DNA of 62,965 bases, the filler included, from Reticulomyxa filosa (taxonomy: Eukaryota > Protista > Foraminifera): assembly GCA_000512085.1 (NCBI GenBank). It is 24 parts of 24 records of this genome, joined end to end, with 100 filler letters (N's around TTAATTAATTAA, not from the genome) between each part and the next. Parts side by side here need not be neighbours in the genome. Positions count along the whole stretch, not along the records: positions 54,364 to 55,950 come from ASPP01026847.1; 23 more parts are not named here. One strand, written 5' to 3'. A model generated the notes under the pieces. That model searched no databases. It worked only from the letters and a program-made list of their open reading frames with translations, and was not told where the DNA came from. The position numbers and the translations under genes are program-made. How positions within the stretch are numbered: the stretch's first letter is position 1; each line of letters begins with the position of its first letter. Positions 4,400-56,449 of the stretch are shown here, piece after piece.

Positions 4400-4508
4400 C
4401 TGTTTGAATATATTTGAATGTTTCAAGATAATTTGGATTGTTTTACTTTTGTTTGTTTTGATTTTTTATTTTTTATTTTTTTTGGTTGTAATACCCGCAT
4501 ACATCTTA

Positions 4509-4550
4509 TCCCCCCCCCCCCCCCCCCCCCCCCCCTCCCCCCCCCCCCCC
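4509..4550 (+). repeat. Poly-C tract at contig end, within a TM9 intron
   Basis: About 40 nearly uninterrupted C residues. Confidence 0.85.
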
Positions 4551-4650
4551 NNNNNNNNNNNNNNNNNNNNNNNNNNNNNNNNNNNNNNNNNNNNTTAATT
4601 AATTAANNNNNNNNNNNNNNNNNNNNNNNNNNNNNNNNNNNNNNNNNNNN
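4551..4650. other. Artificial contig spacer (N44-TTAATTAATTAA-N44), first of 23
   Basis: Identical 100-bp linker with stops in all six frames, starting at about 4551, 6065, 8019, 9708, 11408, 16233, 19880, 21476, 28157, 31976, 33505, 35938, 37065, 41492, 43230, 45031, 47019, 51463, 52619, 54264, 55951, 57121 and 61866. Confidence 0.98.
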
Positions 4651-5391
4651 CTTTTCATTCTCTTTCCAAGGTGAAAAGGATATTTAATATTTTTTTTTTT
4701 TTTAATGTGTTTTGGAAAAAGAAAAAAAAAAAGAAGACAAAAGCAAAAAGAAATAGTTTGTTTCAGGCGGCGCCAATGGGCGCCGCCTGAATTAAACTTT
4801 TTCTTTTTCGCTTTTTCCTTCTTTTTTTTTTTAATATTGAAGCTTTAGCCCTTAACAAAAATATATTTTGTAATTTGAAATTTAATTTGCCTGTATTTTT
4901 TTTTGTGGCAATGTTCACTTTTAGAAGCAGTACATAGCATTGTGGTGTTAAAAGAAGAAGTGTAATTTTTGCATCACACTTTTTATTTTGTTTATCCTTT
5001 TTTTTAAGTGTTACTGGTTGTTGAAATAGAGCTAAACAATTTTAAGTTGATTTTATTGTCATTATTTGTATTGTTTTGATTTACATTTGTTCAGCTGCCA
5101 TATTTTTAATTTATTATTTGGAGCTTTTTTAAATTTTTTATTTACTGTTGTTAATTTTGATTTGCAATTTGAAGCATAACTCTTTTCATTACCAACTCAA
5201 AGTAATATTGTTTTATTGGAATTGTTTTTTTTGCGGTGTCCAAGATTTTTTTCTATTCGTCTTTGATTTCTTTTTTGTTAGACATTAATATAAATAATAT
5301 AAGTGTATGTGAATTGGCATTTTGTTGTTTAGAAAATTACACAACTATATTGCATTTTTTTAAAAAATTTGATTTATTTGTGTGAATTTTG

Positions 5392-6064
5392 TCATTCCCA
5401 AATTCGAATTGTACAATCTGCAGAACCTGATGCAATTGTATTTCCATTTTGAGATAAATCAATACATCTCACAGCTTGAGCATGTCCTTTCAACACATGT
5501 ATTTCCTTTCCTGATTTTACCTTCCATATTCGAATTGTATTATCACTTGAACATGATATAATCGATTTACATTGGGAAAATATTTTACATCATTCACATT
5601 GTTTGAATGCCCTTTCAATGTTTTCCATAGTTTTCCTGTTTCAATATTCCATATTTGAATTGTATTATCTGATGAACAAGAAACAATAAAATTATTATCT
5701 GGAGAAAATTTTGCACGTATTACACAATCAAAATGTCCTTCGAATTTTTTCAATCTTTTGCCACATTCTGTATTCCACAGATTGATTGTTTTATCATTTG
5801 ATGATGATAAAATCATTTTACCATCTGATGAGAATTGTGTACTAAATACAGCCTTTGAATGTCCTAATAATTGTTTTATCTCTATTCCAGGATGTACATC
5901 CCATAATCGTATTGTATTATCTTGCAAACATGATACAATATATTTTCCATCTGGAGAAAAGTTAACATCACATATTCTATTGGAATTACGTTTAAATTTA
6001 TTTACTTCTCTTCCTGTATTAATGTCCCATAATCGAATTGTTCCATCACCTGAACATGAAACAA
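5392..6064 (-). CDS. WD40-repeat protein C-terminus with a 1-nt frameshift near 5570
   Basis: Repeats of GH..V....FSPD...IVSCSSDNTIRLWD. After FPN the repeat resumes in another frame (KSIISCSSDNTIRIWKVKSGKEIHVLKGH...TIRIWE*). Confidence 0.9.
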
Positions 6065-6953
6065 NNNNNNNNNNNNNNNNNNNNNNNNNNNNNNNNNNNN
6101 NNNNNNNNTTAATTAATTAANNNNNNNNNNNNNNNNNNNNNNNNNNNNNNNNNNNNNNNNNNNNGAAAAACATTTGTGTTTACCCAAAAGTTTCTTACTC
6201 TTTTGACGACTCATGGTGTAAACTGCTGTCGAACAAAAACAAAGCAGCGACAAAGGAACTATACGTTTTTTTGCTATTGTCAAAATCACAAGCAGAGGTA
6301 GCTCGGTCCAACAAGAAGTCTTGCAAAAAGCTATTACTGCTCCTGATATTTCCAATGAGAAGAGAGAACAAGTTTGATTTTTTTCATTTTGTCTTGTTTA
6401 TTATACAAAAATATTAATAAAAAAAACTTGGATTGTTCTTGCTGTAGTAGTTTCACTTTGTTATACAGCGAACTAGTTTGAAATTAAAAATATTGAAATT
6501 TTTTTTTCCAAACAACTAATGTAAACACACCAATTCGATATTATTGGCTTTTTTTTTATTTAAAATGTTATCTCTGACTGGTTACCCAAAGTAATTCCAG
6601 ATTTTTTTTAGTGACAGCTTTTTCAAAAAAATGTTTCTATTTTTAAATTAATAAAAACAGAAAAATTTCATTTTTAAAAAATTTTTTACTAAATTCAACT
6701 TTCGTAAATCTCATTACTTTTTATTTCTATCTTTGTGTTTGGATGTAAAGTGTGCACTTGATGCAAGATAAAACGAATGACACGGCTAATTTTTTTCATC
6801 AAATAATTGTGTGCAGCCATGACTATGTTATTGCCAATAAATGGCGTCTTTTTTGTTTTATAACTGTCTTCAGGAAAAATCCCAACGACGCCGGCGCGAC
6901 CATGGAGCAGTGTGGCACTTGAAGTGGTGTGCAAGCCAGAGTGACTGCACGAT

Positions 6954-7793
6954 ATGATTTATGTGTGCAACGACAAGGTGGTTGACGAAACGGACACACT
7001 GGAGGCCATCGGTACAAATGATAGCAGCGCGCCATTGATTTTGATATCACGTTTATCCAACTCACCCAACGCCGTACAAAAGACAAATGGCATGGGCAAT
7101 GACAATACGAACAATGACGACCACGCCGGCACCCATCACCGAGCGACGATGAGTGGAGGTGGTCAAGGTTTCTTTAAATCGACATTCTCGAGAAAGTGGT
7201 CCACATCTATTTTCGCCAATAACAAACCAGAGTCTAATCATACTCGTAGTCAGTCATTGAGCAAAGATATTTCGTTACAATCTGATTCAGTAAGAACACA
7301 AATGCAAAGAAATAGATTATATACATATATGTACGTATATGTACATATATGTATATGTGTGTACATACATTAAAAAAAAAAGATCTTGTCACCAAAAACT
7401 GTATCCGAACCTATGCTGAAGACTCAAAAGAGCAATGGCGACTTGTTTGACATATCCAAAGATGTGCTAGGCCAACTGAAAAAACACAGCCGCACAGAAA
7501 GCAGCGAGCGACTAACCGTGGACCCCGTGGGCGACGTATCTCCGCAAAAACGACGAAGCGAGAGTGTGGTGCAAAAAATGGAACGCTTAGGCTTTGGAGT
7601 GCGTGCGAGTCAAAGCACCAATGTACTTTCGCTCCCAGCGGGTCAAGACAAAAAGTGCATGGACGTCTTGCTACACTGTGCCCAACAATTCGACTCGCCT
7701 GTCGCCCAAGTCTCGATCGAGCGTCTTGTCCATGATATTTCCGATGCGGTCATGACTTTTCCACTCTTCAAAATGTGGTACCCTTTTTTGTAG
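6954..7793 (+). CDS. Ser-rich hypothetical protein, internal exons
   Basis: Two GC-richer ORFs (6954-7373 and 7386-7793) separated by an AT-dinucleotide-rich intron-like tract. No recognisable domain. Confidence 0.45.
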
Positions 7794-9700: not shown

Positions 9701-10976
9701 TTTTTTTNNNNNNNNNNNNNNNNNNNNNNNNNNNNNNNNNNNNNNNNNNNNTTAATTAATTAANNNNNNNNNNNNNNNNNNNNNNNNNNNNNNNNNNNNN
9801 NNNNNNNTTATTATATGTTGATTTAATCAACCCTTTTTTTTTCTTCCAAATCAAAAACAGAAGGATAAATTAATATCCAATTTAGAAATTGTTTGCAAGT
9901 AGCCATTTTTTTCTTAAATTAAATATATTGAAAAAAAAAGCTCATATTGATGCAATAATCAAATTATCTTTGAATTCAATTCACTTTTATGTTAAAAAAA
10001 TTGTAGAAATTTTTAATTAAAAATATTTTGATTTGAATAAGTTATCAAATACGAGATTAAATTATATTTTTCTTGCAAAAAGTATTTATATACATTCAGA
10101 TTATGTTGATTATTTGATTATAATTGATACAAAACGCAATTGTAAACTATTACCAATTATCCTTGTAACTGCTTCTCTTTTACGTTTAAATTATTGTTTT
10201 GAAAAAAATAACAGAGATATTCAAATTAATTATTCATGAATATTTCCTTTAGGATTCTTTGAAAGATTTTCCAAAAATATTTATTGTCGTGGTGAAAATA
10301 TTCCAACAGCAGAGGAATAAATAATAATTTTTGTTTGATTTGCTATAAAAAATAGAATGAATAATATTTATAATTCACTTACATGTCCATCTGATTGCAA
10401 TCAAAAATCTATAAAAATTAACATTGTTGTATCTTCTTGTTTTCTTTATTTTTTCAATATCAACATGACATCAGCACATAATGTATTTCTTAAAATATTT
10501 AAATAAAATTACATAAATAACTTTTCCTTTGGATTGAATTTACAAAGTTGATCATAAACAAATTTTTTTGTTGTAAAAAAGACAGATGTCTATTTTTAAT
10601 CAAATATTAAAAAATGAATTGAAATTGCTAATATTAAAGGAATAATTATAAATATGAACGCTATTTATTTCATTCACAAATATCTTCTGGAAAGTATTTC
10701 TGATTATACAGATTTAATAAAAAAACTCAGTCATAAAGAAATATAAATTTCTTTTCTTGATCTTCTGAGTTATTATGTTATTCGTTGCAATATCTTTTTG
10801 AAAATATACCCTATCAGAAAGAAAAGTTTTTGGAAGTTTACAAAAACAAATACTATTTTTTTTCAAAAAAACATAAAAATGAAAAGTGTTTTAAAAAAAC
10901 TGGAGTTAACAAAGAACTTTAAAGTTTTTTTGTTCAGAATAATTAATAACTAATAATTACGAACTAAAAAAAAAGA

Positions 10977-54263: not shown

Positions 54264-54838
54264 NNNNNNNNNNNNNNNNNNNNNNNNNNNNNNNNNNNNN
54301 NNNNNNNTTAATTAATTAANNNNNNNNNNNNNNNNNNNNNNNNNNNNNNNNNNNNNNNNNNNNAAAAATTTTGATTAAATGTTGTTTTTTCATGGAGAAA
54401 CATAACATCTCTATAAGGTGGCATTTTAGGTTTCAACTTTCTTTTTTATCTTACTGTATTATGTTTGTAACATTTTTTTTAATCTTTAATATTACGAATA
54501 TAATTGATGTTGAAGTTTTTAACTTTATAATTATTGACGCATGTATAGAAGCTACTTCAGGAAATGTTTTTCATTGTATTAATTATTTGTATTTTTCACC
54601 TGAATGAAATATATTTGATTGACTACAACACTAGTTATTCTATTTTGAGTGCTATTGGTAATTGTTTCCGGTATTTTAATCTACAGTAAAATGTACAATA
54701 TTTTTTCTTATGAAAAACATAATTAAACACAATATTTAATTGAATAAAGTTATTGCAGAGATTAACAACGTTCTGAACAGTTGACCTGTTTCCAAAATTT
54801 GAACAAATTTTTCGTACAAGAAAAAATTATATGCAAAT

Positions 54839-55876
54839 ATGAGTACCGTAACATGGAGCTGTCCAAAATTGTTTAACTTGAAAGTAGCAGAACTTCGTCG
54901 TCACGGTTTCCAGGACGTTGAAGATTGGCTGTCACGTCCGGGACATTTGTATATCGGACGTAAGCAACGAGTGTTTATTTACACTAATATACGTTCAACG
55001 GAGTGTCCCGGTACCAGCGTGGTGGCAGATAAGCGAACTACGGCAGGCAAGACATTGCAGAGACCAGTGGATACAGAGCGATCAATGAAACAGGGCAACA
55101 AAATGTGTGAAAAGCTACTTTCTTGCCCGATCGGATCATACATAGACAAAAACCAGAAAATTGTGAAGTTACTAGTGATCCCCGAGTCGAAATGGCATAA
55201 CCCATTTCGAAGCAAAGAAATCGGTCTAGGCAATTCACTACAACAATTTGAAGATTATCTGAGCAAGAACAAAGAGTTACTGCATGGCTTGGATGAGCTC
55301 GATAACGTAGCTGCCATTGGCTGCTGGTGTGCACCTAATCCATGCCATGGAAACGTTATCTTGAATTGGCACAACAAATTCAAACAACTGAAAGCCACCA
55401 CCATTCAACAAAAGTCCACACCGTCTGCAAATGTCGCTCCCGATCAAAAGCCCACGGAGGTCGTAAGCCTCCTTCCACTGCCAGTGTCTGGGGAGGTTCC
55501 TTCGCCAAATTGGACAATTATAACTTACACCAACACAAAGATGAAGAGAATGAAGTTAAGGGATAAAAAAAAAATTCTGAAGAAAATTCTAAAAAAGTTT
55601 AATATATACATATATATATTTTTTTTTTTTTTTTAAGTATTCCCCTCCTTCCTTCCTTCCTTCTTTCCTCAAATAAACAAACAAAAAAATCAATACAAAA
55701 ACAAAATACAGAAAATTGACGAAACGAATGTCAGCAAAACATTGTCATGGATCCTGCGCCATGGCTGTGGCGAATTGGGAATTCCAATGGACGACGCGGG
55801 ATTTGTATCGGTTCAAAGGCTTTTGCAGGCAAAGCCTATGAGAGTACGTAATGTGACCCTTGCCAATCTCGAACAT
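54839..55876 (+). CDS. DUF4326 domain fused to Tpt1/KptA RNA 2'-phosphotransferase (3' partial)
   Basis: Exon 1 has YIGR, SKWHNPF and GCWCAPNPCHG. A phase-0 GTAAGC donor at 55463 and the CAG acceptor at 55711 join it to VSKTLSWILRHGCGELGIPMDDAGFVSVQRLL. Confidence 0.8.
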
Positions 55877-56449
55877 GTACGCTTGAGAGGGGGGGGGAGG
55901 GGAAAGAAAAAAAAAATTACAACTTTGTTATTTGGTTTTCTATTTTGTTANNNNNNNNNNNNNNNNNNNNNNNNNNNNNNNNNNNNNNNNNNNNTTAATT
56001 AATTAANNNNNNNNNNNNNNNNNNNNNNNNNNNNNNNNNNNNNNNNNNNNGACGACGAAAATCGTTGTTAATAATCGAAGATTAACTTCGAACTTCTTTC
56101 AGATACTGCTAGATGTTGCAGTAAATAGTTGTTCTGTGCTTGTCTTCCTTCAAAATACAACTTTTTTTCAAGTTTATCTCGATGATGAAGGACGTTTAAA
56201 TTATTTTTTTTTTTTTTTGTGGAAGATTGATTATCCCTTAACTCGCACTGCTTTTTGCCCTTCTACTTGCATAAACTCAGGTCTTTTTAGTTAAAAGAGC
56301 ACCCTCGTTCTAAGAAATAGAACACAGTACTCAAAAAAAAGAAGCAAAAACAAAAGACACACAAAAATCTTACACCAACCAAAGCTCAATTCAAAAAATA
56401 ATCAAAAGAAAAACAATAAAGTTATTTCAATTTAAATTGAGATTTACTT

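Follow-up and report, generated by a model that had tools for sequence, protein, structure and literature searches.

The window considered here is a stretch of 62,965 nucleotides, filler included, in which 24 parts of 24 records of the Reticulomyxa filosa genome (assembly GCA_000512085.1) are joined end to end. The part examined, a 1.6-kb fragment at positions 54364-55950 (record ASPP01026847.1), contains two coding-like blocks with a GC of 0.40-0.49, outside which the DNA is AT-rich (GC 0.20-0.25). The first block, exon 1 (54839-55462; all features described here lie on the + strand), encodes 208 aa from an ATG at 54839, with an in-frame TGA 36 nt upstream (54800-54802), and comprises a complete DUF4326 domain followed by a linker of about 30 aa, as delineated from Pfam, from its relatives and from an AlphaFold model. 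A candidate phase-0 intron of 249 nt (GTAAGC...CAG, 55463-55711), found by a scan for donor and acceptor patterns, separates it from a 55-aa exon that corresponds to the N-terminus of Tpt1/KptA (55712-55876, Pfam PF01885). Where the Pfam match ends, the next intron begins (GTACGC and then a G/A-rich run, 55877-55950); translation past 55876 is of low complexity and the later Tpt1 exons lie beyond 55950. A Rfam scan of 54364-55950 gave no RNA family match.

Exon 1 matches DUF4326 (PF14216) with an E value of 2.1e-13 and 51.2 bits, for a Pfam cut-off of 25. The Pfam alignment covers profile positions 17-81 only, because a conserved insert of about 70 aa splits the domain. This beta-rich insert (54965-55186) is specific to a protist subfamily, according to the relatives and the model: it is kept in P0001-P0019 and missing from P0004 and from the phage-type members. 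It is modelled confidently by AlphaFold, save for residues 75-90. The possibility that it is itself an intron was considered and ruled out by its coding-like GC and by the 45-55% identity found in the closest relatives.

Upstream of the insert, the family alignment and the model delineate an N-terminal strand, two short helices of the LKVAELRRHG type and the HLYIGR strand (54863-54961; HLYIGR being residues 36-41 of exon 1). The modelled elements are strand 10-13, helices 16-21 and 27-31, and strand 36-38, and L19, G23, W30, Y38, G40 and R41 are conserved among the 92 family members aligned. The helix pair (54863-54943, LKVAELRRHG...DWL) resembles a nucleic-acid-binding motif of the SAP/HeH type and is kept across the family, outside the Pfam model; the Pfam SAP profile itself gave no match.

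Downstream of the insert, the 92-sequence alignment identifies an SKWHNPF motif (55187-55207; S117, W119, N121, P122) and, together with the model, a GCWCAPNPCHG strand-loop-helix (55319-55351) that constitutes a candidate active site (C164, C169, H170). N121, C169 and H170 are invariant among the 92 DUF4326 sequences and all three are kept in exon 1, as are all the near-invariant residues (Y38, G40, R41, S117, W119, P122, G161, C162, W163, C164 and P166). In the AlphaFold model (pLDDT 94.9), strand 159-162 precedes a helix starting at residue 170. As modelled, DUF4326 is a small alpha/beta domain whose strand-loop-helix bears the invariant Cys-His pair; the copy in exon 1 is complete and apparently active.

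DUF4326 is widespread, being found in phages, giant viruses and protists. An exhaustive search among 1.84 billion protein representatives returned 1739 matches, and the best 150 of the 1739 were examined. Among these listed matches, about 19 belong to the insert-bearing subfamily, the top one being 55% identical, and residues 9-183 of exon 1 share 45-55% identity with P0001, P0009, P0002 and P0003. The four relatives of named source are all proteins from the transcriptomes of the Foraminifera Bolivina argentea and Nonionella stella. Others of the insert-bearing relatives come from eukaryotic metagenome contigs. Taken by themselves, these relatives point, short of proof, to a rhizarian source for the DNA. 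Throughout this subfamily DUF4326 occupies the N-terminus; it stands alone (about 180-266 aa) or precedes a low-complexity linker and an enzyme. The enzyme is a 2H phosphoesterase in P0003, P0005, P0007, P0008 and P0154, a metallophosphatase in P0010 and P0016, and peptidyl-tRNA hydrolase PTH2, a tRNA 3'-end esterase, in P0014. On two eukaryotic contigs the DUF4326-2H fusion is one uninterrupted ORF. As a separate observation, the first motif of all five 2H halves is H-I-N-(I/L), not the usual H-x-T/S-x, and the second is H-L-T-(V/M); these proteins could represent a distinct 2H clade.

The partners of the wider family include Macro (L085), YAcAr/SLOG (L124), NADAR (P0111) and microbial PARG (P0139) domains, which reproduces the NAD+/ADP-ribose context described for DUF4326 in two earlier studies (Iyer et al. 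2022, PMC9503650; 2021, PMC7824862). GDSL esterase, RNase H, PIF1 helicase, AlkB-like oxygenase, OGFr_N and DUF5131 are also found. The GDSL esterase recurs as a partner: P0084 has it fused to DUF4326, and on eukaryotic contig L166 a GDSL/SGNH esterase gene (1-627) ends 40 nt ahead of a DUF4326 gene on the same strand (668-1249, P0012). This partner goes unmentioned in the available parts of PMC9503650 and PMC7824862. The OGFr_N fusion is metagenomic (L013, 30-1184; OGFr_N E 3.9e-12). As for the more distant, insert-less P0004, it belongs to a giant-virus contig (L005) with NCLDV capsid and histone genes, on which a protein of 1063 aa that matches NADAR weakly is encoded at a distance of 2.4 kb (4404-7595 / 10001-10453).

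The second exon aligns with positions 3-53 of the 177 of the PTS_2-RNA profile (PF01885; E 8.3e-13, 49.2 bits, Pfam cut-off 26), and the match extends to the final residues of the exon. It carries SKTLSWILRH at 55733-55762, that is, the SKxLSxxLRH motif that supplies the first two residues of the catalytic Arg-His-Arg-Arg tetrad (Arg-His at 55757-55762). Its best solved relatives, by sequence search of the PDB, are the tRNA 2'-phosphotransferase 1 chains 7yw2 and 7yw3. The exon starts seven codons ahead of the motif, right after the sole available AG. Upstream of the exon, its frame stays open as far as a TAA at 55634-55636, 76 nt away, and no in-frame ATG lies between. A word search with the 55-aa exon gave no candidates and a viral scan with the same probe gave nothing.

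The sequence-only reading of this DNA had proposed that the two exons are spliced into a single protein, and its description of the locus was borne out in detail. The intron runs exactly as it had placed it, with GTAAGC from 55463 and CAG to 55711, 249 nt in all and phase 0 at both edges; the complete DUF4326 domain that it had seen in 54839-55462 is confirmed by the PF14216 match and by the full set of invariant and near-invariant family residues; the Tpt1 N-terminal exon with its SK..LS..LRH motif is likewise recovered at 55712-55876, by the PF01885 match and the location of the motif; and this exon is, as claimed, devoid of a usable ATG, its first in-frame Met coming only after the catalytic Arg-His. 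The domain matches of both exons are far beyond chance; this cannot be said of the splice signal. The sole consensus-like donor in phase 0, and the best of the phase-0 donors, is GTAAGC at 55463; from the in-frame stop to the Tpt1 motif, no AG is present other than that of the acceptor CAG. The 1.6-kb part contains GTA[AC]G four times, two of these within conserved coding sequence (54960 and 55844), and we estimate that a phase-0 donor site would fall in the tail region by chance in roughly one case in eight.

Since the two domains, the phase-0 GT-AG link between them and the missing Tpt1 start are all real, a fusion is the simplest gene model. We give even chances to this reading, according to which the examined part holds the 5' part of one eukaryotic transcription unit and the splice that we infer, from 55462 to 55712 in phase 0, yields a protein with DUF4326 at its N-terminus and Tpt1 at its C-terminus. 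Apart from a weak mini-exon with a GTAACA donor (54392-54466), no ATG-bearing exon of the part other than exon 1 can reach the Tpt1 exon in frame via GT-AG, and exon 1 is the one substantial coding sequence able to do so. Furthermore, the order DUF4326-linker-enzyme is the habit of the insert-bearing subfamily. Against the fusion speak the presence of the same donor type in conserved coding sequence and the composition of the candidate intron, whose first 100 nt or so are not AT-rich and contain the tail motif of P0001, SVWG, read in a different frame. As regards its domains, its phase-0 link and the absence of a Tpt1 start, the fusion claim stands; it is weakened by the lack of a second example among the proteins and loci searched and by these signs, within the candidate intron, that the sequence may be read otherwise.

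The signs in question deserve a closer description. Within 55463-55711, the drop in GC, from 0.6 to less than 0.2, comes only past about 55570: the first 50-100 nt are as GC-rich as the exons and a coding-like GC persists to about 55510-55570. In the main frame, the TAA at 55634-55636 is the sole stop across the candidate intron, i.e., one stop in 83 codons, and at most one stop occurs in 1.9% of dinucleotide shuffles, a statistic that the homopolymer and microsatellite content may inflate. The length of 249 nt is a multiple of three. In another frame than that of the main ORF, an ORF at 55465-55566 carries SVWG (55483-55494) and ends with a TAA (55564-55566) that falls where GC drops. The corresponding pattern, [SDEN][VI]W[GND], occurs once over the six frames of 54364-55950 and appears in 0.27% of region shuffles; it is found 30-70 aa past CHG in seven relatives (P0001, P0003, P0005, P0006/P0154, P0007 and P0010). 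Further downstream lies a low-complexity block (T16, (TCCT)6 and an A-rich 12-mer repeat; 55619-55701, Tandem Repeats Finder), in which a pattern scan locates an AATAAA (55672-55677).

These features could also be accounted for by two separate products, a possibility that we hold to be less than probable but serious. A stand-alone DUF4326 protein of about 240-265 aa would have its tail in the so-called intron, following the main frame to the TAA at 55634 or, given a short cryptic intron or an error of one base in the assembly, the SVWG frame to the TAA at 55564. The Tpt1 exon would belong to a transcript starting elsewhere, its first exon being upstream (with DUF4326 nested in an intron), beyond the part, or supplied from the very beginning of exon 1 through alternative splicing. 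Indeed, P0001, the closest relative among the matches listed (55% identical), is a stand-alone protein of 260 aa whose contig looks derived from an mRNA: it has a leader and a stop, and an AATAAA close to its end. The foraminiferal transcriptome proteins P0009 and P0011 have 262 and 266 aa, to be compared with the 265 aa of the read-through ORF here, for which no database record was found. The coding-like GC to about 55510-55570, the other-frame SVWG (p ~0.003) and the position of the AATAAA, downstream of both candidate stops, point in the same direction. However, no ATG-bearing mini-exon with a compatible donor exists within 55463-55711, and the 76-146 nt that separate the candidate stops from the Tpt1 exon are too short for a promoter, a first exon and an intron. 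Moreover, same-strand nesting is uncommon, and the switch of frame requires either an unproven indel or a GC-rich intron of 62 or 71 nt with a poor donor.

The SVWG motif, in conflict with the frame of the main ORF, suggests that the 3' end of a stand-alone ancestor has become intron and left a relic, that there is an alternative isoform, or that the assembly contains an indel. In the last case, a one-base error upstream of 55463 would shift the donor from its phase and undo the fusion.

Several other ways of reading the interval were tried and set aside. A 22-nt intron (55463-55484) yields the third frame, where a stop is soon met, and an earlier acceptor at 55637 has no phase-1 donor. A reassigned TAA was rejected, as exon 1 contains no in-frame TAA despite its many Gln codons. 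A hint of GC by codon position for the SVWG frame was discounted, the three-periodic nucleotide model being powerless with 184 training codons (3.5 bits). Spliced-leader trans-splicing is a possible source of an ATG, and it was put aside as it is not known for Rhizaria.

Two repeats are also present. A low-complexity inverted repeat (55622-55651 / 55887-55916; 30 nt, 70% complementary) has one arm in each of the introns around the Tpt1 exon; its arms, a T-run/CT-rich one and a GA-rich/A-run one, could pair in the pre-mRNA or be due to chance. In turn, an A-rich direct repeat of 26 nt, 85% identical (55138-55163 / 55693-55718), relates a piece of exon 1 to the acceptor together with the 7 nt that open the Tpt1 exon, and may also be a product of chance.

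The fold of exon 1 is matched by a DUF4326 cluster representative of the ESM Atlas (TM 0.86 by target, rmsd 1.4, 114 residues). Outside the family, a PDB search by sequence with DUF4326 gave no match, and Foldseek returned nothing at E < 0.09 for either the exon 1 model or a minimal family member of 110 aa (model pLDDT 97.5). In an exhaustive structural scan the best matches were weak, with Z of at most 4.9. Many Cys-phosphatases are listed, at Z 2.5-4.1 only, and scores as high or higher are reached by NADAR (Z 3.8 and 4.2) and by the C-terminal domain of RapZ (Z 4.9 and 4.2); the weak neighbours include the RNA 5'-phosphatases BVP, PIR1 and the capping-enzyme triphosphatase, at Z 3-4. The canonical C-x5-R phosphate loop is absent from the candidate active site, where, in C-W-C-A-P-N-P-C-H-G, the sixth residue past C164 is His170; a variant phosphate-binding loop is possible. 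In PMC9503650, DUF4326 is placed in the rhodanese / Cys-phosphatase superfamily. The structural results obtained here with models are compatible with this placement, without confirming it.

DUF4326 had been taken as uncharacterised by the sequence-only reading. This holds for experiments, as no experimental function was found in the literature searched, but not for computation, since Iyer et al. 2022 (PMC9503650) predict that it processes terminal phosphates on the ribose of ADP-ribose derivatives. The same paper summarizes the established chemistry of Tpt1, in which the RNA 2'-phosphate attacks NAD+ and ADP-ribose 1'',2''-cyclic phosphate is released, and describes a pathway (KptA -> ADPr>P -> 2H -> ADPr-1''P -> Macro) where a 2H enzyme opens the cyclic product to the 1''-phosphate and a Macro domain takes the phosphate off. 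The proposal that DUF4326 acts on ADP-ribose products or RNA ends gains support from the 2H, metallophosphatase and PTH2 partners of the relatives, but is not new, as far as its action on ADP-ribose derivatives was already foreseen there.

The chemistry that we infer for DUF4326 comes from the context of its fusions. The Tpt1 half would remove 2'-phosphates from RNA in an NAD+-dependent manner, releasing ADP-ribose 1'',2''-cyclic phosphate; a 2H phosphoesterase, the fused partner of DUF4326 in its closest relatives, would open the cyclic-phosphate ring; and the DUF4326 module would then take off the remaining ribose-linked phosphate, a step that in yeast is that of the Macro protein Poa1. Because the subfamily is joined both to the maker of the cyclic product (if the fusion is real) and to the class of enzymes that open it, the remaining phosphate hydrolysis is the most economical assignment for DUF4326, and C164, C169 and H170 could form the catalytic centre of this reaction.

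Going further, we tentatively propose, and with limited confidence, that the fusion and the foraminiferal 2H fusions together would mark DUF4326 as a non-Macro phosphatase of the ADP-ribose phosphate that RNA 2'-phosphate removal leaves behind, built on a Cys-His variant of a phosphatase-like fold, with SVWG as a relic of the origin of the fusion. A stand-alone DUF4326 gene would have come to be read through into a neighbouring Tpt1 gene, and its old 3' end would have been intronised.

A somewhat more doubtful option is that the fusion is real and DUF4326 acts on the nucleic acid, either removing a phosphate or an ADP-ribosyl-phosphate cap or recruiting Tpt1 through its N-terminal helix pair. 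PTH2, RNase H, PIF1 helicase and AlkB-like oxygenase among the partners would fit such a role, as would the RNA 5'-phosphatases among the weak structural neighbours (Z 3-4), and a jumbo-phage analysis tied DUF4326 to components of DNA replication and R-M systems (PMC7824862). Nevertheless, the commonest partners (Macro, NADAR, PARG, SLOG and 2H) process free or conjugated ADP-ribose, and the structural matches are too weak to guide a choice of substrate.

Among known systems, the nearest are the DUF4326-2H proteins (Bolivina argentea P0003, Nonionella stella P0154, and P0005, P0007 and P0008 from environmental eukaryotic contigs), which belong to the same subfamily, carry the insert and are 42-47% identical. 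In them, too, DUF4326 comes first, and a low-complexity linker leads to an enzyme at the C-terminus that belongs to the RNA 2'-phosphate / ADP-ribose cyclic phosphate pathway. They differ in that their partner is of the 2H cyclic phosphodiesterase type and is encoded in a single ORF, whereas here Tpt1 would be joined via the candidate intron. In yeast, Tpt1, Cpd1 (2H) and Poa1 (Macro) are separate proteins (summarized in PMC9503650), and the same chemistry is expected for the Tpt1 half described here. The yeast pathway has no DUF4326; in R. filosa the enzymes would be joined, and the predicted DUF4326 activity would replace the last, phosphate-removing step.

The viral DUF4326 proteins fused to Macro, SLOG/YAcAr and NADAR, as described by Iyer et al. 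(2022, PMC9503650; 2021, PMC7824862), belong to the same Pfam family and have the invariant N, C and H as well as the near-invariant motifs. Unlike exon 1, those of phages and giant viruses are without the insert, and a KptA/Tpt1 partner was neither reported for them nor found in our searches. The Bodo saltans virus, in turn, has a KptA-Nudix fusion (PMC9503650), where Tpt1/KptA is likewise joined to a domain predicted to process the ADP-ribose product; its partner is a pyrophosphatase (Nudix) and the protein is viral, whereas here the partner would be DUF4326 and the protein cellular.

A second example of the architecture was sought in several ways. No Tpt1 partner was present in 40 Pfam-scanned DUF4326 proteins, mostly the longest of the best 150 of the 1739 matches; two word searches found no DUF4326-Tpt1 protein; and no Tpt1-like sequence was detected with the 55-aa exon as the only probe within 10 kb of DUF4326 at 165 metagenomic and viral loci. 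The least likely of the readings, to which we give little credit, is that the juxtaposition is non-biological, a mis-join via 50-80 nt of low-complexity sequence, or that the locus is decayed, its frameshifted DUF4326 and Tpt1 fragment being no longer expressed as proteins. In its favour, the architecture was found nowhere else (best 150 of 1739 matches; 165 loci), the fragment has 1.6 kb, only homopolymer and microsatellite (T16, the TCCT repeat and the A-rich repeat) lie between the coding blocks, and the conflict between the main ORF and the SVWG frame would fit a frameshift mutation. Against it, both blocks are whole, free of internal stops and with all the family-invariant residues in place, and they share strand and frame with one main-frame stop in 249 nt (p ~0.02), which would be an odd coincidence for a random join.

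Both domains of the predicted protein belong to known families and the functional idea is already published as a computational prediction (PMC9503650). What would be new is the DUF4326-Tpt1 architecture, together with the protist subfamily and its 2H, metallophosphatase and PTH2 partners. Should the fusion turn out not to exist, most of the functional argument would still stand on the 2H, metallophosphatase and PTH2 partners of the relatives. Taken with these 2H fusions, a link to Tpt1 would narrow a general prediction, which leaves both the phosphate and the ADP-ribose derivative unspecified, to a single reaction that can be assayed and that belongs to a well-defined pathway. If true, it would also be the first case, in a cellular eukaryote, of a Tpt1 linked to a module that may clear its by-product.
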